Shown piece by piece: positions 5,648-63,144 of a stretch of 64,000 nucleotides of DNA (position 1 is its first letter; every line of letters begins with the position of its first letter). Source of the stretch: Lepidodermella squamata (lineage: Eukaryota; Animalia; Gastrotricha); the NCBI GenBank assembly GCA_047495785.1, contig JBLDXI010000011.1, forward strand, positions 1,178,001 to 1,242,000, read 5' to 3'. Made by a program: the position numbers and the translations under genes. The notes below the pieces were generated by a model. That model saw nothing but the letters and a program-made list of their open reading frames with translations. It was not told where the DNA came from and made no database searches.

Positions 5648-8144
5648 GCTACTAGTTTTCAGCGGCCGCGTTAGGGCTAAGGTTTGAAATCGTTTGTTTT
5701 CGCTTATTCTTCTATTTCTCCGGGAAATTCAGCGGGTGGGGCGCGTTATATTATTGTGATTTATTGCGCTTAAAGTTACATCAATCAAATAGTTTACCAC
5801 TAAAATATGACAAGAAACGTAAAATCTATGCGAGAATGCTGGACTGTTCTTACAGGACGCGTAGAATCAGAGATCAAAAGGATGCATATATAAAAGACAA
5901 AGACCGGCGTGGTGTTAAACTTGCTTTGTTACCGCAATCTCGCAAACAGTTACACCCGCCCGCAACTGCGGTTACCGCAGGGAAATTGATGACAGGACAC
6001 GGGCATCACCACGGAATATTCCCGCCACCGCCCTGCGCCGCTGCAAACGAGTGATCGATGTCTGAATTAGATCTCGGTTATCGGTAAACGAAATGAACTG
6101 AGCGGCTAAATCATCGTAATCTAAAATACCTTGTATTTTTTCTTTTTGATATTATGAACATGTTCTACGAGACAGCTTTGATGATAACGGTGGTAACGCC
6201 TTTGGGATCAGCTTTAATTAGTCTATAGGAGTTAGCTACGGCATCACTGCGGACGACGAAGTATCACACAAGGATGAGAGAACATCAAGGATAAAGAAGG
6301 AAGGCAACGTGTCTTCCGCATCAGCAACATCTATGCCAGTAAATTCGACATGTTTCCCCCAGCTTTCCGTTTATTTAAATGATACCAATGCCCTTTTCAT
6401 CGTGAAACAGCTAGTTGCATTGCATTTCGCCCAGAAAAGGGTGCGTTTATCTGATCCGCGGACTGAAACTTGAGCAACAAGTTATCAAGGCCGCTTGTTA
6501 TATCATTAGACTCCTCAAGACAGCAGAAAACCACGTTGCACCGCCGTCTTCTGGATTCCAGCGGTGGATTTCAACGGCAAGGAAATGCAATGTAAGGCTC
6601 ATTTCACCGATTTTGGGTATACCACATTGCGAAAACTGAGACCGAATAAGAGAATAAACTGAGACCGTTTTTCAGTGTCGCATTCTAAAACGTTTCTCGC
6701 TTCGCTCGCGTTCAGTTTGATTTTATTCGGGATTTTATCAATTTCGAGCTCGGTTGCCATCAAAAACGAATTTAAACAAGCAATCAATTTGTAGCTCAAA
6801 TAATTGAACTTATTCCGAACCAAATTTCATTCATTTTAGCAAGGTGTCCTACGAGCCATTCTCATAGGACACTACTGTGTCAGACAGTCTTAGCAGACAA
6901 AAAGTTTGGGGAACGCTGCCGTAAACACACTTGCGTAACACGCGCGTGCGTTAATTCCCCTTTGTGTAAACAAAGTGCGTAAAGTTTATTACATACATGG
7001 ATTAATCAATATTCAACGGCATAAGTCAACAATATATCAATATTTGCTATCTATTTGCTATCAATGTGAATTCATCTCCAAAGATGCATCTCCTCTTGAT
7101 AGCATCTCGGAAACCGCGCCAAAACTCCACTTTTTGCGATCTTTAAAACTTGAACTAATTAATTACAAAGTGCAATAAATATTGTCGGATGGAGCTATAT
7201 TATGAATTGCTGCTCAGTTTTCCCTTATTTTGAAATTGACATGAAGCAGAGTGTACACAATAGCAGAAATATAAACTGTTACAGCGGATGCAAAAATGCA
7301 TAAAACATAATTTAAACGTCCTTTCATTTCGTATTGTTTTTCAGAGTGACACATGCACTCTTAAGCTTGTTTATTTAATTTTGCGAGTGAACCTGTCATC
7401 TGTCATAGTCAATGCTCAGTAAAGCAAAAGCTATTGAATGGAATTGCAATAACTTTAAAACTAAGTTTTAGCTGGACGAACCAAAAGGTTACTTGAAAAA
7501 GCAACCATTTTGCCGTGCACGATTTTTTGCCACCATTCCAGCGTCCAGCCCTACTTTATCGCAAGTGTTCCTAATATTTATAAGCACTTATCCAACACTC
7601 AATGGAGTGTTTGATATCTATCTGCAGGCGTTGGAGGCTCAAAATTCAGTTGACGACAGACAATAAAGGAGTTATTATAATTTATTTATTTATTTGAAAG
7701 CTCATGCCCACAAGAGAGGGCAGCTTGACAATGAAAAAAAACAACGATTGATGTTATATTCAATTATGCGCTGTGGACAAATTAGCTAATCACGGGCTTC
7801 AATAAATCATCAGTAAGACAGACACCGTCGAGGACAAGAAAGGAAATTAAAATGAAAACAAAAACGCCGACCGCTTATTAGTCGACGTCAGTATTCCTCT
7901 AAGAATTCCTCATGTCTGCCCTCGCTACTAATTTGGGATTATCGCAAGCAGTGCAATGGCCAATTCTGATCCCAATTCTGAGACCAATTCTGCCAATCGC
8001 ACTGGCACTGAAATCGCGATCATCTCTGCAACAGAAACCCTCGTTATAACATGTGGAAGAACAGACAAGACCTGAACATTTATTAATTACGCGATATGAA
8101 AAGCGAATGATGATATTCAGCAAAATTTGTCCTTTCAATAAGTG

Positions 8145-9093
8145 ATGAGCTACTTGTATTTAGTAATTGCTCTTGCCGCTGTTGTCGCAGTTGACGCGTG
8201 CCCTGCTTCGACGAGCACGCCATGTCCTACTGGCACATGCGCATCAGGATCTGCGTGCACAACCACGGCAAACCAGTGTGACACGTCGAGCAAAAGCTGC
8301 GTTCCAACGAGCAACCTTTGCAGTGATACGACGAAAAGCTGCCAAACAACCGTAAAACACCTGATGCATTTCACGCCATCTCGAAATTGTATTCTTTCTG
8401 CATTCAGGTTACATACCAACTGTGCACAATCGCCACAACGCAAGGTGCTACAACACCAACTCCGGCTATCCAGCAGTCCAACATACAGTTTTGTATCGCA
8501 AGTGGCGCGACATGTACTTCGGTGTTTACAAGCGGCGTTACTGTAAGACATTAACTAATTACGTTTTCAGGAGTCGCTCATCAATATGTATTTTAATCAG
8601 CAAGCAACCGCGACGGCGAGTGTGCCTAACAGCTACACTGACTTTGGCACTTGCTGTACAAATACTGTTGCGAGCGGCCAAACGGCAAATATCGTATATG
8701 AATACCTTCCGAAACAGGGCACCAGCAATCCTACACTGGTCTGTGTTGGCGGGGTAGATACTACGCCGTACAGAGTTGCAAACGGCGGTACAAGAATCGG
8801 TTACTGCGTCCGCTTTCCTTATACGGCCAACGCTAATGCTGACGGAATCGCTACTACGCGCATTGTGAGTTTGCCAAAGATTGCACGCTAACTGTCAATA
8901 AGTGTATTTTTCCCAGAACACTGTTCAATCTAACAGCGCCAGTGTGTACATTTACTCTACTTTTGCTGCCTGCTGTACTGGAATATTCGGTGGTCAAAAG
9001 GACGCACAAAATCTGAACGTAAATACTTGGGGTACTGCATCAGCATACGGCATCACCAACTTCGAAAAGTGCTCATCAACCACGCCAGCGTAA
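8145..9093 (+). CDS. Secreted Cys/Thr-rich protein, copy 2 (exons 8145-8351, 8408-8542, 8601-8864, 8917-9093; 260 aa, 18 Cys)
   Basis: Signal peptide; donors gtaaaa/gtaaga/gtgagt and acceptors ttcag/atcag/cccag; spliced frame open to TAA at 9093; exon 2 differs from copy 3 mostly at synonymous sites, supporting coding status. Confidence 0.9.
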
Positions 9094-30878: not shown

Positions 30879-32604
30879 CTTGTTAAAAATCAGGACTAAG
30901 AAAAGTTAACTGATGCGCGCGCTTGTGAGGAATACAAGTGCGCGCGCCTGATTCTCGTCCAGAAAGTCCTGATTGATAAATTGAGTGCACGCGCAACGTT
31001 ATCGCCACGCGCGAGCTGTAGTTGTTAGTTGTTACGCGAAATGTACATAACTTTTACCGAGATCGCCGTATCCTCGCGAATTCAAGATTTTCGCGAAAAT
31101 TACTGTTTTATTACGCAAATATCCAAGGATCGCCCTCGCGAATTTAAAATTTCGCGAAAATATAAAATGGTCATTTTTGGGCAATTCGCGAATTCAAGAT
31201 TACCGCGAAAATGAGTACGTATACAGTATTATCACATGGAATTTCGGCCAATACAAGGCATTAAATTTTCACTCACGAGGAAGGTAACCCTCATAAAACC
31301 AATTTCCTGCTAAAAAGCGAGCTCCAAAACCTCAACTCTTGGTATGAGAGGCGGGAAGTGGCAATTGCAAGGGGCTCGTTGAGGTTTCTAGCGACAATGC
31401 GGGCAGAAAAGTCCTCGGCCGGGAGCGAAAATAGTTTGAGAACAACTGCGTTTAAAAGAAGCTATTTACTTGCCACTCTTGGCCTTGAAACGAGGATAAA
31501 TCCGAGTCTACGACGCTAACGATTTGAGATACAGGATACGGTGTCTATTGTTATTCAAAAATGCTTTTTGCCTAATTTGCGCTTGGAATTTAATTGACGA
31601 ATAATGTATCATTGTTTCCACTATCCGGGTGAATGGCTTTTAATGAGAAAACTACGAGTCCTCTATACAGCAGAGATGAAGTCTCGCACGCTAGCGCGTA
31701 AACAACTCTGAATAAAAGCCTATGCCATTCTCAAGTTGATAAGCTTCGACCAACTAAGCACATTCGCTTTTTACATTGAAACGAGTCCGTATGTACGGAA
31801 GTTATGTCTGAACCGTTTTACGTACGATCATTTCGTGTAGATGCTGATATATTGAACAGACAAATATTGCGAAGGCAAACAGTTAACTGCAGTTACATTG
31901 TGAAATTGGAAAATCTCTGTGTCCATCTGCTTTATCTATCTTGCCTCACATGCTTCGTCATCCGCGGCGATTTTGAATTTTTCAAAATGCCAGTACATTT
32001 TTAGAAATGGAGCGTTCCGCTAAATCAGGTTCCGCCGAGTTCTAAAATCTCTGGCTTTGTTGACTTGGCGGATCAAATTTAGCGGACCAAATCTAGGTGT
32101 AGTACTTGAACTGCTTGAGTGAGGCTAAAGAGCTTAGGTTTGTATAGAAGGTCGTTGGATGGCCCTTTTCAGTAGGAATCGAGCAATCACATGACACACC
32201 TCCAATCTAGCCCGAAACACGGGTCCACTAAAAATTGGCCCGTTGAACTCTGCGACGTTAGCCACATAATGGAAAAGAAGTTCCGCGTAGCGAAGCATAA
32301 CATTGAGGGTAGAAAGGATGAGTTTTGCTCAGAGGTGCCCTAAATATCACTCCATTTTTACAAATGAACAATGAAATACGCAAATTGTTGTTAACAAAAG
32401 CGTTAATACGACGCGATGTATGCATACTCGTGGCGCGAATTATCCTCATTCTTGAGATAGAAAACTCCCCCCCCCCCTGAGCCCTCTTGAAAAAGTCAAG
32501 ATTTTTATTTCTGTCAGAATTCATTAAATTCAACAATATTTGTTACGATAATACGATTTGCGGCTAGCCTCAGTCATTCTCCAGCATATTAACCCAAGCA
32601 TAGT

Positions 32605-33886
32605 TCATTTGCTCATCGGCAGCGATACGTATCTGCCCACTGTGAGGTCACGAAAGAATGTTGTAAGCTGAAAATTAAATGCGAACAGGAAATGAGAGCG
32701 ATATTGGATGAATAGAACTCACCTCGTTTTCATTAAAATTGAATACCTGCGTGAATATCTTCTCAACGTTGCGCATCAGGTCAAAGTTGTTTGGTTCAGT
32801 TGACAGAACTTTCTGACTTTCGGCCTTAATTTTCAAATGGTACTTAATACTAATAGACGGATTGTTGGAGCTCGATTCAATTTGGTGCCACCAGCGAGAT
32901 GGAATGAGGATAATATCGCCAGGATTTAGGACAGCTTCTGAAGCAATGACGCCTGCGGCTGACGGAAACTTTGTGAAGTCGGGTTTCTCCAGGTCAACTT
33001 GGGAGTACTTATCACATGGATGATAATAAGGATAGGAATATAAATTGCCGAACTGCGACGGCTCGAATAGTATTACTCGGCTTGTGCCGCTCACTTGCAA
33101 CAAGATGAGATACTCCTCCTCGTAACCAGTTACAAGCTTGCTTTTCTCTTCGCTGACCATCAAAAAGCTTGAATCTATTTCTACCTGATGGCTAGGGTCG
33201 ACATGTTTTGCTATCCATTCGGAGAACATTGGCTTAACAGCGTTTTGCAGGGCTGGCAGTTTTGCAGTGTTTTGCAGGAGAAAAATCGTATTTGAATCGA
33301 GATGTCTTTCCTCGAATGCATCGTGAAACTGAGCGAAACTCATTTCTACAGCCTTAACCGAACTTTTAAAATTCTTGACGTGCTTCTTCTTTGTTTCGCT
33401 GCATTCTAAGAAGCGCTTGTTCTCGGAAATTCTAATATCAAAGATTTCGTCTCCATATTCCTCGAGCATTTCGTCTAGGGTGAAATCGTGAGCATCTAAA
33501 CCGTTATCAGAAATCACAATAGGTTCCTGCTTTACATGGAATTTTACAATCGTTAAACAGTTGACCCAGAGACTAACGTTATTCAGTTTGAGCTTTTCCT
33601 CGGAAAGTTTGATTCTCGGAATTGGCTGTGTTTGGAAGTAGTATTGCTGAAATAGTTTGGATTTTGAGCAGCCATCTCCAGCAGTCGCATCACAGTAGTC
33701 CTGGAAACAAAGATGGATCATCTAGATCAGAGAGGCCAAATTTCAATATTTTTCTTACTTCTGTGCTGCTACAGGCTGCTCTGCTGAGCCTGAAGTTAAT
33801 TATTTTACGATTAGGCTGAATGTAGCTTTATCAACTCACACATGAGCAATGAAGATGAGAAAATGAAAAGATGACATAGGCTGCAT
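32605..33886 (-). CDS. FIH/HIF1AN-like JmjC paralog 3, predicted catalytically dead, with signal peptide (exons 33886-33840, 33789-33759, 33700-33578, 33526-32723, 32667-32605)
   Basis: LYSYPYYHPCDKYSQVD, PGDIILIP, WWHQIES, MRNVE and GRY are retained, but TPAHYDE is replaced by VTGYEE and GTKR by GTSR. The spliced N-terminus reads MQPMSSFHFLIFIAHVLSRAAC; all introns are 50-58 nt. Confidence 0.87.
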
Positions 33887-34320
33887 GTGATTCCTTAGGG
33901 TCGAACACGATCTCAAATAAGTTTCTGAAATATTGGAATTTGTTTCTATAGATAAGTTAAGTTGACTAATGAGTAAGAGAAATTAGAACAAATACGAAGC
34001 TGGAGAGAAGGTACAAATAAAAACTGCAAAGTAATTTAAGCTCTTTTCTAGTTTTATTTTAACCAAATGTCTTCATGATTTCAATTCCGGAACAAAAAAC
34101 TTGTGAACTGTCTATGAATTTCATGTTGATGACACAGCATTTGGCATTTGGGTCTGACGTAACGGGACATTTTGGACATGTCAACTACGACCCACATAAC
34201 ATGGACATAAAAAGTGTGCATCGCACCGGCGGAATTAGCAAAGACCCTAATAAATTTAAAACTTAGCAGGCCTTCTACTTTGGAAAATTAAGCGACAAGT
34301 TAGAAACGTTAGACTATCTA

Positions 34321-34701
34321 ATGAATTTAGCCCATTTTCTCTTCGCGGTTTTGGCTTGGGCAGTTACGATGGCTGTTCAACCGGGCGATGACATTGTGGC
34401 GTTCACAAGGGCACTGGATCTTTTCAAATCATTTGACTACGCAGCCGCCGTTGATGGATTTTTTGAAGCGCAACAAGTTGTCGATCAACTTAAAGAAGCT
34501 GGCTATAAGCCATGGCAGCGGGAGGAAGATATTGTGTTATACTTGGCACAGTCGATCGTTCATTCCACCAAAGACTATGCGAAAGCTGTTAAAATTATAG
34601 AGGACTATACAGGATTTCATACGTCCTATTTAGACCTTTTAGCTCGCTTCGCTAAACAGTATAGTTATGACGCCATCAAGGCGAATAAAACCGAATTGTA
34701 A
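34321..34701 (+). CDS. Small helical (TPR-like) protein with signal peptide and C-terminal KTEL ER-retrieval-like motif, 126 aa
   Basis: MNLAHFLFAVLAWAVTMA leader; TPR-like patterns (ALDLFKSFDYAAAVDGF, YLAQSIVHSTKDYAKAVKIIE); KTEL-stop immediately followed by AATAAA. Confidence 0.8.
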   Translation: MNLAHFLFAVLAWAVTMAVQPGDDIVAFTRALDLFKSFDYAAAVDGFFEAQQVVDQLKEAGYKPWQREEDIVLYLAQSIVHSTKDYAKAVKIIEDYTGFHTSYLDLLARFAKQYSYDAIKANKTEL

Positions 34702-35142
34702 TAAAACACATTTTTCCATTAGCTGTAATAGTTTTTATAATGGTGAATTGAGTTTGATTTGAGGCGAAGTAGTTACCTTAATGAAGAGCCCCCTTGATAC
34801 AGCGAAGATCATATACACTTTTGAGTGCGCGAAGTAGCGGGGAGACTGGGAGTACGGTACTCCCAGTTCCACCAGCCGAGAAAATAACAGGATTTTAGGA
34901 GAACTTAGTCCAACTTCTCGGGATTCCATAGCTACCATGTTCTGTTGAGAATAAGAGCTGTGAATAGATGGGAATTCGTAATATCTGACCAACTATTTAT
35001 ACCCAAGTTAGAATAATAAGTTATAATAAGTCATTGATAAACTTGCATGTGTATAGTCACCCTCTATCATTTAACTTAAATCAAATAATTGGTGAGATAT
35101 TACGAATTCCCATCTATTCACAGCTCTTATTCTCAACCGAAC

Positions 35143-35225
35143 ATGGTAGCGTAGTGGTTAGCGGTGATGCGCTATCTCAGAAGATCCATAGTTCGAGCCC
35201 GACTCCATTGGGCTAGTTTTTTATA
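35143..35225 (+). other. tRNA-derived (SINE-head-like) segment
   Basis: A-box TAGCGTAGTGG and B-box GTTCGAGCC at tRNA-like spacing, followed by a T-run; no clean cloverleaf. Confidence 0.55.
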
Positions 35226-36111: not shown

Positions 36112-37124
36112 TTAGAATTTTCGATTCAGCATTTTTGACTGCCAGGCAACCATGCCCGATTCGGACTGGAACCAGATGGTTAAATTCGAGCGCAACTGCT
36201 GGCCGTGGTCGAAACCCTTTTTCTCGGTGACGCGAATGTTCTCTGGGACGAAATTCGGTAGCGCGCCTTCTTTCTCGATCTCCTGCCACGTGTCCCACGC
36301 CTCGCGATCGCCGATGTTGTAGTTAGAAACCTCGGCCATTGCGAAATTATGAAGCGTACAGATGGCCAGCACGGCGTCTTCTGCCATTTCTGGGCTCAAC
36401 TCCATCACTTTCCGAAGTAGGCGGAATCTAGCTGATGCAATGCCGAATGCGTTTTCGACGACACGCCGACCGCGAGATAAACGATAATTAAAAGTTTGCT
36501 TATTAGCCGGCAAATTTCCGGATGTTTGTCCGGGATAGGGTGAAAGGAAGTTCCAGTCTAGCCCGAACGCCGCATCGCCAACAAAATAATGGTTCGCCTT
36601 CATATTGCCACCAGGTAGAGGAATAGACTCCGTTGGCGTGGTGTTGCTGCAATATTCCAGCAGGCCGCTATTCTTGAATACCCCGCCGTCACTGAAACGG
36701 CCGTGGGCACCGACATCGACCAGGCAGAAGCGATACTTGGCGTCAACCACCGCCATTAGCACAATCGAGTAAGTTCCCTAAAAAAATTAAAATTAAAAAT
36801 TAAAAAATCCAGAAAAATTGAAATTAAAAATTTACAAATTAATTTTGAGAATATTTTTTCAAATAAAATAAAAATAAATAAAAATAAAATAAATAAATAA
36901 ATAAATAAATAAATAACTAAATAAAAATTGCTACCAACCTTATAATTATAGTATTCGCTCCCAGATTTTGCCGGACGAACGATGACGCAGTGTTTTCCGT
37001 CTACCGCGCCGCAGCAGAACGGCAAATTCCAGTACTGGCCAAACTCGGCGGCGTTCTCTCGCCACGTTTCAGCGGTGGGAGTCGGCATGTAAATTGGCAT
37101 TAGGGCGGTTGCACAGCCGTACAC
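36112..37124 (-). pseudogene. Harbinger DDE transposase (HARBI1/DDE_Tnp_4-like), 5'-truncated; exons 37124-36939 and 36777-36112
   Basis: GAVDGKH, YYNYK|GTYSIVLMAVVDA, GRFSDGGVF, VGDAAF, FNYRLSRGRRVVENAFG; the N-terminal region is missing. Confidence 0.92.
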
Positions 37125-40977: not shown

Positions 40978-42779
40978 TTATCCAGTCGTTATTAAGGTCA
41001 AATCTGTCAGATCTTTATCTTGAGTCCAGTTCAACCTCGCCACCATAATTGGGTTCCAAGCATGTGGACATTTCTCATTTAAACGCAAGCGTTCAAGATG
41101 CGAAGGCAACGCTAATGGCCGCTTCGATAGATCATCGAATTCAAACAAAAATTCGTAGCTATTCACTTCACTCCACCTCGAGTAGTTCGCGCAGAATTCG
41201 GGCTTTTGTTCGAGCTCAGTCAGCCCGTAGCAGTAGCCTTTTCTCAGAGCGTGGACTAAAATTCCATCAGTTACTTTACCGGGTGCAAAATATGTCCAGT
41301 GTATCGATAAATGGGGTCGTAGTCTCGATATTATTTTTCTGCTGATTCCAGCTTCAGATAAATTTGCCACCTGGCCGTATGGTGCTGGACCCGGCCAATT
41401 GGGCTCGACCTCGTTGACAATCCAGTAGTAGTCATCGCGAAAGTGCCGCCAAAGTATGGTACACATCATGTTGTACTCGGAGTAGAGGCCGTATCGGCCG
41501 AATGCAGCGAAAGCTTCGTCGAAGGTCTTTGTATTTCTCTGCTTTCTGATGACTTCGCGGATGAAATGCAAGTGGGCAACCTTGACGATGACCGGGAAGA
41601 AGCACATGCAATTGAAGACTTCTGAAATGGATTAACTTTTTTAGAAAAAGCATCTTTTGAACTTTGAATTTGCGTGGCCACATTGAACTATTGAAACTTG
41701 ATGAAACAGTACAATTTCGATTGGGGAAATCCTGATCAAAAATCAAAACCATCATACCGAATAAGGGGTATCGTACCCCCTATAGTTCTTCAGGCCAAAA
41801 TGGAAATACCCCCGTAAAATCACAGGTTCTTTGGTCGTAAAATTGGGGCCCGAAAATACCCCCTAGCTTGAGGAACCTACTCCTCACAAACCTCGGGGTT
41901 CTTCAGGAAAGCTTGACAGAAAACAATCATTATTTCATAATTCATAATTACTATTGTGACGTTCTGATCTGGAACCCTCGCCCTCATGCCGTAGAACCGC
42001 TCAACCGAATTAAAGGTGGTTCCATGCAACCATACCCTTGCAATATGTAAAAGGATCGTCCCTCTAACGTAGCAATCTTTGGAACCTAAATTTGGTCTAT
42101 AATGCCTTAATACAGCAAAGGCATCAACACTCACCTTTGAATCCAGTATAAGCGTAAGTGTTGCCTGGAACTCGGTACCAATTACCCAGCCAGCCTTCTC
42201 TCGGTCGTCCGTATAACGGTCTCAGTACAGGTTTGCCATCAATGAAAGATCTCGGCCTGTAATCCGAGTGACAAACGCTGTATCTGTATCAACAAATCCA
42301 ACATAAGTCGCATTAGTCCAGTTGTCAGCCCACATTTTCAACCACTGGGACTTGTCCCAACCCGGGCAAGGAAACACGCGTTGAGTAAGGACTGTCCTAA
42401 CCTGAATCCCATCGAATGACGCCATGGCTCGTTTTTCAACCCGATCAGCAAAATGCCGGACGTTAGGATCTTCAATATCGGTGACAATGGATAATTTCAA
42501 CTCCTGATTCGTAGGCCAGAACATGGCTAGAGTTGGAATGAACCAGGTTGATGTCTCCATTTCGCCGACTTCATTCGAAGGCGTAGTCAGCATCAATTCA
42601 ATATCGGGCCATTTCTCATTGCAATTGTCATTATTACCAAACGAAAATTTGTCGATGACGAAATCACGGAAATGTGACGAATGGTTATAGCCTTGTCTTA
42701 CAAGGTTGAATAACAAATATATTGAGCTAAAAACCGCGAGCAGTATTTTTAGTGGTTTGAGGTAAACAGTCAGGGGCAT
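40978..42779 (-). CDS. Type II membrane GT-A-like (DxD) glycosyltransferase-like protein A; exons 42779-42135 and 41621-40978; 1-nt frameshift at ~42246
   Basis: N-terminal TM; GWDKSQWLKMWADNWTNATYVGFVDTD; NCMCFFPVI; YSEYNMMC. Colinear with paralog 61270-63144 with the same phase-1 intron; adding one T restores DLFIDGKPV. Confidence 0.78.
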
Positions 42780-46626: not shown

Positions 46627-48093
46627 TCATATGTAACATCCGCGTAAATTCTGAAACATCATAACAGGCTGGTGGTTGTTCATTCCGTTAAAGTATTCAT
46701 AGCCGATGAAGCGCCAGCATTCACTCATCATTTGATAGCGTTTCGGCCCATACATTCTATTCTGGTTGAACTGAACGGTATCTGAACCAAGGGGCACGCC
46801 TAAAAGCAGCAATCCCCCGGGTTTTACGATACAACTTATTTTAGCCATTTCCATAAGATCACCATCCGGATTCAACGGATCACTGTACCTGCCTAGACCG
46901 CTGTGCTCTAGGCTTGAAAAACTGACGGCGAAGTCGTAGTGGCCGAAAACTTTCCCCGAGCTGATCATCTCCTCGAATTCTTTAGCGTGAATGTAAGACA
47001 TGTAAGGATGCTTCGGTGGGAATATCCCGCTAAGATCGAGATAGTCAACAGTGGTCACGTGGCTGCCTGTGACTTTCAAAATTTCGTGCTCGACCCACGG
47101 GTAGTAAGACCCTATGACAACGCTGCGTTTGTTCATAAAGTAATCAGGGTACTTTTGGAAAAAATGACGCATCTTGCCATGGGCGTCTACTGTATAAGTG
47201 TATTTCATGGGCCTTGCTGTTGGCGAGGATAAAACTTTTGTTCCCGACGATTCCGTAATATTGACAAGGTATCGCCACTCTGCCTCGCAGTCTGATGTAT
47301 CCGCCGCTTTGTCCGGGGTGTATTCCTCGATAATCTTATCGTTATTCTCGGCAGTAAACCACGGTTTGCTGTGTTCGATGAACCTGTCCCTCTCGCCGCC
47401 GTAATAAACTTGTTTGAGCTCGCCAAACTTAACCGGCCGCTCGTATTGTCTGATACTTCTGCACAGGGGCTTGAGAACATTCAACCGCCAATAGTCGGTA
47501 AAACTTGACAAATTGTACGCAGAAAGACCTCGGTTTTTCAAATAACGAAATTCCTTGAAATCGCCGTTGGATTTCTGTATCCCTGCATAGCTCTCAGCTA
47601 GAATCGCCTCGTTGTAATCATTTTTTATGGCGAGAAATGGGAAGCCAGCCTTGTATTCTTGCCATGGCATGAACCAGCCAGCTAGTTTCGCCTTCATCTC
47701 CTCGGTCATGGGCTCCAACGCCTCGATTTTATCAATCAGCGGGCAATTAACTGCCGCAGCCGCTTCCTTGTCAAAGTTGTCTAAACATCGCGCGCAGAAA
47801 CCAGGCAAACGAGGCGAAGAGCTGTCTCGCACTACGACTGTATCTAAGGATCTGAATCAGACGTGTAACGTTCATGTTAAACTTTGCTTTCAATAAAAAT
47901 ACCCTTGAAAATTCTTGATGACTTCAGGTGAAGGAACGGGTGTTATTACTGGCCTGATGGATTGAGGCGGTGTTTCAGTGCTAAAAAGGAAGTTGAGCGA
48001 AATTATGGCCACGAAGGTTATCAATAGGGCTACGGCTGCTCGTATGTGACCGCGAGATATGCGGCCTCTAATATATTCATGAAAAATCTTCAT
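46627..48093 (-). CDS. DUF268-family SAM-dependent methyltransferase-like type II membrane protein (exons 48093-47903, 47851-46627)
   Basis: TM AAVALLITFVAIISLNFLF; 51-nt intron; VVIGSYYPWVE, YDFAVSFSSLEHSGLGRYSDPLNPDGDL, KPGGLLLLGVPLGSD and RMYGPKR are typical DUF268 motifs. Confidence 0.88.
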
Positions 48094-61269: not shown

Positions 61270-63144
61270 ATGCTGTTTCACAAAGTTTCAACTTCCGCCA
61301 TTGCTATCATCGCTTTGGCATGGCAAGCAATCTCGCGGGCTCACTGGCTTAACGGTTCATACACAAGGCCTAGATGTTCGGAGCAGCTTTTACCGAAAGT
61401 GAAAGATGATCCATGCAGCAACTTCTACAATTGGGGCGTTGACTTGGAACTCATGCTGCCCATCCCGCCAACCGATCAAGGCCGCGATGAACTGGCCAGC
61501 TTCATCCTGCCGTCGTTATCGCTGTTCTGGCCGGCTGATAACCTCAAACTCATGTTCATCACCGATGGTGAACATACGAATGTCGATGCTTTCAAGCAGA
61601 GCTTGAAAGATGTGCTTGTGCTGCCTAACGTTTCACTGAGCTGCAAAGCTGGTTATCGGGTGCTGTTGAATTACCCGAATGTCACGCTCAAGCGGGGATG
61701 GGACCGCCAGCAGTGGCTCATGTTCTGGGCTGATAACTTCACAACTTCGGAATACGTCGGCTTCCTGGACAGCGATGCTGTGTTCGTGACTCGGGTGCAT
61801 AGGTACGATTTGTTCGTCGATGACCGGCCTATCATCAGGGCGGTTTTCGGGAAGCCGTACGATCCAACCTGGTGGCCGCAAACTTCCAGGGTGACCCAAG
61901 CAGCGATTGGAAAGCCAGGTGGGTATTTCCACCCTTCATACTAGAACGTTTTTTCCGTTTCGTCATTCGAAATTTTGGCGCGGAACTCAAAGCTATTTTC
62001 TAAAGCCCACATTATAGAAAGTGAAACCAGCCCACTTACAAATACACGAGTGCAGAACTTCCCGGTAACCAACATTTATTTTCATGAAGCGCGCAATTGT
62101 TCATAGCACATTACGCGCTAGATTTAGTTGCTTTCTATTCTGGCTATTAGACAGAAATCCGTTGTGGTCGAAATCGAGCTATCATCGCCCAGTACAGGCG
62201 AAGTGCGCGATTCTTGAGCTTCAAAACTGAATTCTGATCTGAATACTAACTTCTGACAACTTTTTAGGACTGACTGTTGTCAGTGCAGTAAAGAGGGACG
62301 TTAGGGACCTTCATGTGAGTAATTTAGAATCTGTAATTCGAATGCTGAAAACATCTGATAATCTGGATAATCAGGGTGCTCGAAGATATTTTTTGTGATA
62401 GGATTGTCAAGTTTCGCACTCGTGTAAAAATAGTTAAGGTAAAACCCTGATAGACATATGTTCGATGAAATTTATCGGACAGTTCTTGGTCCTCGGTCGT
62501 TCGCAAACTAAAGATTGCTTTATTGAACAGAGCCCATGAACTGCATGTCGTACTTTCCTGTCATCTTTAAAACTACACACTTGAAACCCATGCGTGAACA
62601 TATTCGGAAGCAGTTCAACACAACAACGTTCGACGAAGCCTTCCTTCTGATTGCATCGCACAAAATCTACTCCCAGTTCACCATTATGTGCGCATACCTA
62701 TGGTACTATCACCGGGATGCTTACTTCTGGACTATCCGAGAGCGCGAGCCTGGTTGGAAGGGCCCATTCGCGCCTGGCCAGGCGAAGACTCCAGCCGAGG
62801 TAGGCCTTACTCAATCTCTGTTCGAGATACAACGCCCTTCGCTGGCTATTCATTGGAACTATGAGGCATTCAAAGACGAGCGGAATGCAATGACATCATT
62901 ACTAAGAACAGGTGTTTGCTATTCAATGAGTGAAACTGAGAAGCTGAGGACGAAGTTGTGCGACAATCAGCCCAGTCGATGGGACTCGCTTAATACTTAC
63001 GAGTGGACCTTTGAAAGCTATACCTTCATTTGGAACAACACGCTGACATTGGCAGCCCATCGCGAGCGGCTTCAAAGACTTGATCAGTGTCCGCATAGAT
63101 GGAATTTTAGGCCAATGAGAAATCGTTTTCAAAGCGTGCAATAG
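61270..63144 (+). CDS. GT-A-like (DxD) glycosyltransferase-like protein B (exons 61270-61918, 62531-63144)
   Basis: Signal/anchor SAIAIIALAW; GWDRQQWLMFWADNFTTSEYVGFLDSD; EPMNCMSYFPVI; YSQFTIMC; intact paralog of 40978-42779. Confidence 0.85.

Follow-up and report, generated by a model that had tools for sequence, protein, structure and literature searches.

A predicted secretory pseudo-enzyme derived from FIH and its divergent neighbour, a gene for a small TPR-like protein ending in KTEL, in the gastrotrich Lepidodermella squamata

FIH (HIF1AN), the asparaginyl hydroxylase of HIF-alpha and of ankyrin repeats, is known as an oxygen sensor of the cytosol, encoded by a single-copy gene. A 64,000-nt stretch of the genome of the gastrotrich Lepidodermella squamata (the window; assembly GCA_047495785.1, contig JBLDXI010000011.1, positions 1,178,001–1,242,000 of the forward strand) contains three FIH-like genes, termed P1, P2 and P3. 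The contig, termed C11 below, is part of a 121-Mb assembly. P3 (paralog 3) lies head-to-head with a small gene coding for a protein of 126 amino acids (aa) that ends in KTEL. An earlier note on this DNA had proposed that a catalytically dead P3, an active paralog and the KTEL protein, acting as an adaptor, form a hydroxylase complex of the endoplasmic reticulum (ER). The question raised by this locus is whether the two divergent genes work together or are simply neighbours. The account we favour, with moderate confidence, is that they are separate genes: P3 would code for a secretory FIH pseudo-enzyme that binds without catalysing, and the 126-aa gene for an ER-type protein of an orphan family.

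The structure of P3 was derived from RNA contigs. Three public sequencing runs were compared with the window; run X1 behaves as a transcriptome assembly, X3 is RNA-like and X2 is genomic. A 1246-nt contig of X1 aligned to positions 32487–33926 with four skips of 50–58 nt, each bounded by GT..AG when read on the minus strand; the T-run that precedes position 32487 corresponds to the poly(A) end. The five joined exons (Table 1) translate to 355 aa, from an ATG at 33886 to a stop codon at 32605, which bears out the limits and the intact frame that the earlier note had given for this paralog. The ATG of the raw open reading frame (ORF), at 33721, was considered as the start of P3 and rejected, since it sits in the intron upstream of exon 3. 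Parts of the transcripts of both P3 and the 126-aa gene were also present in run X3, and in both genes an AATAAA lies upstream of the poly(A) site. The comparison of X2 with the window revealed two differing positions in 2.8 kb, the sole one in the P3 coding sequence (CDS) being synonymous. The joined sequence of P3 was used for translation, alignment and tree building, and single exons were used for searches and for the fold and interface runs.

Among the RNA contigs, P3 was seen only in its fully spliced form. Intron 3 (33526–33576; 51 nt) is in frame and stop-free, and its retention would add 17 residues. Intron 2 (33700–33757) contains an in-frame ATG (33721) directly after a TAG, so that a transcript retaining this intron could encode an isoform without the signal peptide described below.

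The raw P3 ORF matched the Pfam family Cupin_8 (PF13621) with an E value of 2.9e-24 (86.8 bits, against a gathering cut-off of 27.4), and human FIH in the PDB with an E value of 2e-37. The AlphaFold2 (AF2) model of exon 4 had a pLDDT (predicted local distance difference test) score of 86, and its best 24 PDB matches were all FIH, with template-modelling (TM) scores of 0.81–0.87 (0.85–0.87 for the FIH fold). Residues were numbered according to a 349-aa ortholog in which the histidine of HYDE is 199 and the GYKR lysine is K214. In this numbering, P3 carries the substitutions Y102E, Y145F, Q147L, T196L, H199G, D201E, N205L, F207L, K214S, R238K, Q239Y, N294K and W296H. The iron ligands His199/Asp201/His279, which are H, D and H in the other five FIH-like genes of the genome and in 20 orthologs, have become Gly/Glu/His. 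The residues Tyr145, Thr196 and Lys214, which bind 2-oxoglutarate (2OG), are replaced by Phe, Leu and Ser, with N205L and N294K changed as well, and Arg238 and Gln239, which position the target Asn, by Lys and Tyr. The change of HxD to GxE and that of the 2OG-binding Lys to Ser had been read in the earlier note; the alignment confirmed both (H199G, D201E and K214S) and showed that the loss goes further.

Eight residues (H199, D201, R238, Q239, H279, Y145, T196 and K214) and an alignment score to human FIH of >200 bits are required to call a protein FIH according to Hampton-Smith et al. 2019 (PMC6488082). P3 keeps one of the eight, H279, while each of the five other paralogs and of the 20 orthologs, which range from a choanoflagellate to vertebrates, keeps them all. 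The phmmer score to human FIH was 132 bits for P3 and 241 bits for P1, against the 200-bit criterion, for which the paper used BLAST. Over the 85 paralog-invariant columns P3 keeps 48, but at the catalytic ones it keeps just 3 of 14 (Fisher p 0.006). Having lost one iron ligand, every 2OG-binding side chain and the Asn-positioning residues, Y102 among them, P3 almost certainly has no Fe/2OG hydroxylase activity. As far as its sequence tells, it is not an FIH in the strict enzymatic sense and is better described as an FIH-derived member of the Cupin_8/JmjC superfamily.

P3 might instead be an enzyme of changed chemistry, working with a more hydrophobic pocket, with E201, H279 and new ligands, or with a cofactor other than 2OG. 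The E201-equivalent and H279 do remain, and the pocket substitutions, mostly to Leu, Phe and Tyr, are not random. Structures of the FIH variants D201E, D201G and D201A are present in the PDB, and some D201 variants of FIH retain activity. However, we know of no 2OG oxygenase that works without the proximal His and five 2OG contacts, and no new cluster of His, Asp or Glu residues stands out in the alignment. Altered chemistry is thus a highly improbable explanation for P3.

The loss of catalysis was accompanied by rapid divergence. P3 is 30–38% identical to its paralogs, and in a maximum-likelihood tree its terminal branch, at 4.88 changes per column, is about ten times as long as the median of 0.5. 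This branch, together with the replacement of 11 of the 14 catalytic positions, would fit an expressed but functionless gene that is turning into a pseudogene, with relaxed selection and leftover transcription. The failure to find a P3 ortholog points the same way, both searches for one being weak: the word-index protein search with exon 4 was blank, which is uninformative since human FIH in the PDB does match P3 (see above), and a scan of metagenome contigs gave no match. Synonymous sites between P3 and its paralogs are saturated, and a neutral-drift simulation, together with the catalytic-erosion test, was used in place of the ratio of non-synonymous to synonymous substitution rates (dN/dS). 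When the CDS of a paralog drifted neutrally, ≤0.1% of the simulations had an open frame at ≤60% identity and 6–9 stop codons were expected, whereas the 355-codon frame of P3 is open. In addition, all four introns are spliced in a frame-preserving manner, invariant positions outside the catalytic set are kept in 45 of 71 cases (63%), the modelled exon folds confidently as FIH, and the only coding difference found in the second DNA data set (X2) is silent.

The C-terminus of P3 points in the same direction. The MRNVE..GRY region that the earlier note had reported as kept was found, its end being encoded in the last exon, where the FFRDLTVGRY motif is conserved. The exon with the FFRxLTxGR[YF] motif, which forms the dimerisation helix of FIH, is conserved in all six paralogs, and 11 of 17 residues of the last exon of P3 are identical to those of the FIH-like copy on contig C38. 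Judging by the modelled fold and by this C-terminal helix, the dimer architecture of FIH is probably retained in P3. Since frame, splicing and dimerisation helix are all preserved despite the long branch, P3 is maintained and not decaying: it is a pseudo-enzyme kept as a protein long after catalysis was lost, and the pseudogene explanation is unlikely.

A genome search identified six FIH-like genes, the three in the window plus two in tandem on contig C32 and one on contig C38. They formed one group in the maximum-likelihood tree with a support of 100/100. P1 matches human FIH at E 2e-70. The C38 copy probably corresponds to the canonical cytosolic FIH; it has the shortest branch (0.22) and carries a long acidic extension at the N-terminus. 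The N-terminus of P3 consists of a short polar stretch followed by an 11-residue hydrophobic core, a small-residue site and a Cys-x7-Cys motif; this arrangement is most likely a signal peptide, which would give P3 entry into the secretory pathway. The Cys-x7-Cys motif was also found in the upstream exons of P1 and of the C32b copy, while C32a retains the first Cys only and canonical FIH lacks the motif. Several FIH-like copies appear to have been redirected to the secretory pathway. None of the six genes ends in a KDEL-like C-terminus, in agreement with the earlier statement that no JmjC protein at this locus has a retrieval motif of its own. Visual inspection was the basis for the signal peptides of P3 and of the 126-aa family. 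It was also used for the upstream and last exons of P1, P2 and the C32 and C38 copies, on six-frame translations unsupported by RNA.

P3 would accordingly be placed as a lineage-specific, fast-evolving FIH paralog with a polyadenylated transcript from which four short introns are removed, and with a product that most likely enters the secretory pathway via its N-terminal signal peptide. There it most likely acts through binding alone: it could pair with the active secretory paralogs as a non-catalytic dimer partner, or serve as a decoy or holder for the clients of those paralogs. P3 is clearly homologous to FIH and has the same fold; the two also share the N-terminal PIPR motif and the C-terminal dimerisation helix with its final GRY. 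It differs from FIH in lacking seven of the eight defining residues, in having a signal-peptide-like N-terminus and a Cys-x7-Cys insert, and in lying on a very long branch within a species-restricted expansion of six genes. Proteins of this kind are known from other systems: the nuclear JARID2 is a non-catalytic JmjC protein, and CRTAP is a non-catalytic partner of P3H1. In both cases, as suggested here for P3, a hydroxylase-family fold or paralog is kept for binding or scaffolding, although CRTAP, unlike P3, resembles the non-catalytic N-terminal part of P3H1 and not the oxygenase domain. By analogy, the nearest functional counterparts of P3 would be JMJD8 and non-catalytic JmjC proteins such as JARID2. 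JMJD8 is a JmjC-only protein of the ER lumen that has a signal peptide, forms dimers and has no established catalytic activity (PMC5684140). Both JMJD8 and P3 are JmjC/cupin proteins of the FIH-JMJD5-JMJD7 group with a signal peptide, a predicted one in P3, but P3 is a descendant of FIH rather than a JMJD8 ortholog, and its loss of ligand residues is explicit.

The 126-aa gene is divergent from P3, the distance between the two ATG codons being 435 bp, as the earlier note had stated, and was found to be expressed as an unspliced, polyadenylated mRNA. The X1 contig of this gene, 447 nt long, has an A-run after position 34721, and an AATAAA overlaps the stop codon. The signal peptide, TPR-like helices and KTEL tail previously ascribed to its product were all recovered: the N-terminus is hydrophobic as judged by eye, the AF2 model (pLDDT 81) has five TPR-like helices after the signal peptide, and the tail reads KTEL. 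A six-frame search of the genome detected seven further copies, giving a family of eight. The full-length frames are 29–48% identical, and over the matched stretches, all of them stop-free, the identity to the window copy is 30–47%. The seven full-length copies share a hydrophobic, signal-peptide-like N-terminus and predicted TPR-like helices. The remaining copy, in the C11 cluster, lacks the N-terminus and ends in KKEL; it may be a pseudogene. The tails in the family are KTEL (two copies), NEEL, NKEL, KEEL, IREL (two copies) and KKEL, the terminal E and L being invariant in the seven aligned full-length copies. No other ORF ending in xxEL was found in the window. A word-index protein search with the 126-aa protein gave no match, and an exhaustive profile search of 1.84 billion representatives recovered no small homolog of the family, the matches being long multi-repeat TPR proteins only.

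The fold of the 126-aa protein was approached by several routes. The family profile matched Fis1 with an E value of 0.01 and long TPR proteins with values of up to 4e-10 over many repeats. Family paralogs matched TPR_2 and ANAPC3 at 4e-4 to 7e-4, below the Pfam cut-offs, while the window copy matched neither, and the language-model neighbours of the 126-aa protein were all TPR clusters. The best eight fold entries corresponded to the peptide-substrate-binding (PSB) domain of collagen prolyl 4-hydroxylase (P4H), with Z 10.6–11.8 and about 100 residues aligned, followed by generic TPR proteins at Z 9–10; among helical repeats, decisive matches start at a Z of roughly 13. The Foldseek match to the P4H peptide-binding domain was weak (E 0.1), and no sequence or profile match linked the family to the PSB domain of P4HA (P4Ha_N). 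The 126-aa model and the PSB domain share the same small architecture of about 100 residues, with two TPR-like hairpins and a capping helix (Z 11.8, 100 of 102 residues aligned), but their identity is 8–12%, with no detectable sequence similarity. Further, the PSB is a domain within an enzyme, while the 126-aa protein stands alone and has its own retrieval-like tail. The structural match is weak, falling within the generic helical-repeat range, and is taken as common architecture rather than as demonstrated kinship. The analogy drawn earlier with the helical parts of ER hydroxylases fits the best fold match, the P4H peptide-binding domain, but a Z of 11.8 is a weak match.

These features suggest a family of small soluble proteins, each with a signal peptide, two TPR-like hairpins, a capping helix and an xxEL tail. 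On the evidence of its sequence, the 126-aa protein would be secretory, with an -EL tail that fits ER retrieval, and the family members are probably residents of the ER lumen that bind client peptide segments. AGR2, an ER protein ending in KTEL (PMC4940162), resembles the 126-aa protein in being a soluble protein of the secretory pathway with this ending. The tail is the sole feature shared, as AGR2 has an unrelated, thioredoxin fold.

Is the 126-aa protein, then, a partner of P3? In such an arrangement P3, possibly with an active paralog, would bind the KTEL protein, which would retain the complex in the ER and might supply a substrate-binding module. The two genes are head-to-head, and the 5′ ends of their RNA contigs, which are not mapped transcription starts, lie about 370 bp apart. 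The RNA-like runs X1 and X3 each contain both mRNAs, which shows expression and not co-regulation. Both proteins look secretory, none of the FIH-like genes has a retrieval tail of its own, KTEL is the ER motif of AGR2 (PMC4940162), and the top fold matches of the 126-aa protein, at Z 10.6–11.8, are to the P4H peptide-substrate-binding domain. The arrangement would parallel that of collagen P4H, in which a TPR-like peptide-binding domain belongs to the alpha subunit, and PDI, as the beta subunit, provides retention through its KDEL (PMC9676403). The likeness to collagen P4H is an analogy and not evidence for the P3/126-aa pair. Further, the pairing is unique: seven of the eight family members have no FIH-like neighbour, and five of the six FIH-like genes have no family neighbour, the C32 and C38 genes lying far from any member. 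Other family copies adjoin genes for Cys-loop-receptor-like (Neur_chan_LBD), MFS and unannotated multi-pass membrane proteins, and the closest paralog of the 126-aa gene, which also ends in KTEL, adjoins unrelated genes. The fold match, for its part, is too low to tell kin apart from generic helical repeats. Interface prediction between P3 exon 4 (267 aa) and the mature 126-aa protein gave 0.44, 0.02 and 0.00 and counts neither way; the P3 chain used lacked the N-terminal 67 and C-terminal 20 residues.

The ER hydroxylase complex with a KTEL adaptor was not supported by this comparison, the pairing having been found once among eight and six genes, with no recurrence. A physical complex between P3 and the KTEL protein is improbable, and the full arrangement, with retention and a substrate-binding module, is very unlikely. 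A bolder version is slightly less probable again: the KTEL protein would be a detachable substrate-binding and ER-retention subunit, and P3 would join an active paralog in a heterodimer, as its non-catalytic half. Lumenal clients would be hydroxylated or held by this assembly, a collagen P4H in split form. Adjacency is the single link between P3 and the 126-aa gene, and it is most likely coincidental or at most regulatory; the spacer between the two 5′ ends may hold a shared promoter.

Some observations weigh against the account of two separate genes, one for a secretory pseudo-enzyme and the other for an ER-type protein. By rough post hoc arithmetic, scattering eight family members and six FIH-like genes randomly over 121 Mb would bring a pair to within 1 kb in <0.1% of cases, and so the adjacency is not something to be taken for granted. 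The 126-aa protein, moreover, finds its best fold match in the substrate-binding domain of an ER 2OG oxygenase, which favours the earlier proposal. The N-terminus of P3 has no basic n-region and contains two His within its h-region. Finally, of the family tails KEEL alone fits the strict KDEL pattern of PROSITE (PS00014, [KRHQSA]-[DENQ]-E-L), which leaves KTEL and most of the family outside it. As regards the adjacency, the neighbourhood is rich in secretory/Golgi-type genes, which makes a secretory neighbour of P3 less surprising.

The window as a whole is eukaryotic, with low coding density and a GC content of about 42%. Just downstream of the 126-aa gene, at 34824–35200, the depth of run X2 rises to hundreds to thousands and many divergent contigs pile up, which indicates a dispersed repeat. 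A remnant of a Harbinger/PIF-type DDE_Tnp_4 transposase, split over two ORFs, lies at 36112–37124 on the minus strand (Pfam E 4e-23). Two identical, inverted ORF copies, about 6 kb apart at 1746–2155 and 8142–8551, code for a secreted-looking, Cys-/Thr-rich protein of 134 aa, and a similar Cys-rich ORF is present inside the cluster of 126-aa-family genes on C11. Two paralogous genes, at 40978–42779 (minus strand) and 61270–63144 (plus strand), are each in two parts, have a hydrophobic anchor at the N-terminus and match no Pfam family, and a DUF268 methyltransferase-like gene lies at 46627–47832.

Table 1. Positions of the FIH-like genes, the 126-aa gene and their parts (window positions unless a contig is given)
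Feature	Position	Strand	Basis or remark
FIH-like ORF P1	20314-21183	minus	Pfam Cupin_8 and human FIH match
FIH-like ORF P2	26762-27550	minus	Pfam Cupin_8 and human FIH match
FIH-like raw ORF P3	32675-33721	minus	Pfam Cupin_8 and human FIH match
P3 exon 1	33839-33926	minus	X1 contig; 5′ untranslated region (UTR) and CDS start (ATG 33886), signal-peptide-like start
P3 exon 2	33758-33788	minus	31 nt; X1 joints 33788/33839 and 33699/33758; signal-peptide-like end, probable cleavage region
P3 exon 3	33577-33699	minus	X1 contig, FIH alignment; Cys-x7-Cys motif and FIH N-terminal YYFxTxPIPR motif
P3 exon 4	32723-33525	minus	X1 contig, alignment, AF2 model; double-stranded beta-helix core
P3 exon 5	32487-32667	minus	Last 20 codons, FFRDLTVGRY then VSLPMSK, stop 32605; 3′ UTR with AATAAA, poly(A) site 32487
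P3 codon G for H199	33125-33127	minus	Exon 4
P3 codon E for D201	33119-33121	minus	Exon 4
P3 codon S for K214	33080-33082	minus	Exon 4
P3 codon for retained H279	32885-32887	minus	Exon 4
Spacer between divergent mRNA 5′ ends	33927-34295		About 370 bp, from RNA contig ends
126-aa ORF	34321-34701	plus	No Pfam match
126-aa gene mRNA	34296-34721	plus	Unspliced, polyadenylated; X1 contig with A-tail, X3 contig; CDS 34321-34701
126-aa protein, signal-peptide-like N-terminus	34321-34377	plus	About 19 residues, by eye; ends TMA before VQPGDD; aligned with the ISA-L cleavage-like site of paralogs
126-aa protein, C-terminal KTEL	34687-34698	plus	ER-retrieval-like; -EL invariant among aligned paralogs
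Six copies of the 126-aa family	C11:286-323 kb		Cluster
One copy of the 126-aa family	C34:1007 kb		Adjoins MFS transporter gene
FIH-like pair C32a, C32b	C32:3005-3010 kb		Intact catalytic residues
FIH-like C38 copy	C38:354 kb		Intact catalytic residues

As a natural FIH pseudo-enzyme, P3 makes it possible to ask about non-catalytic roles of FIH, such as the regulation of dimers or the binding of clients. With its kin, it would add a second JmjC lineage, after JMJD8, to the ER/secretory compartment. Independently of P3, the small xxEL TPR-like orphan family is a tractable candidate for ER factors of a new class that bind clients.

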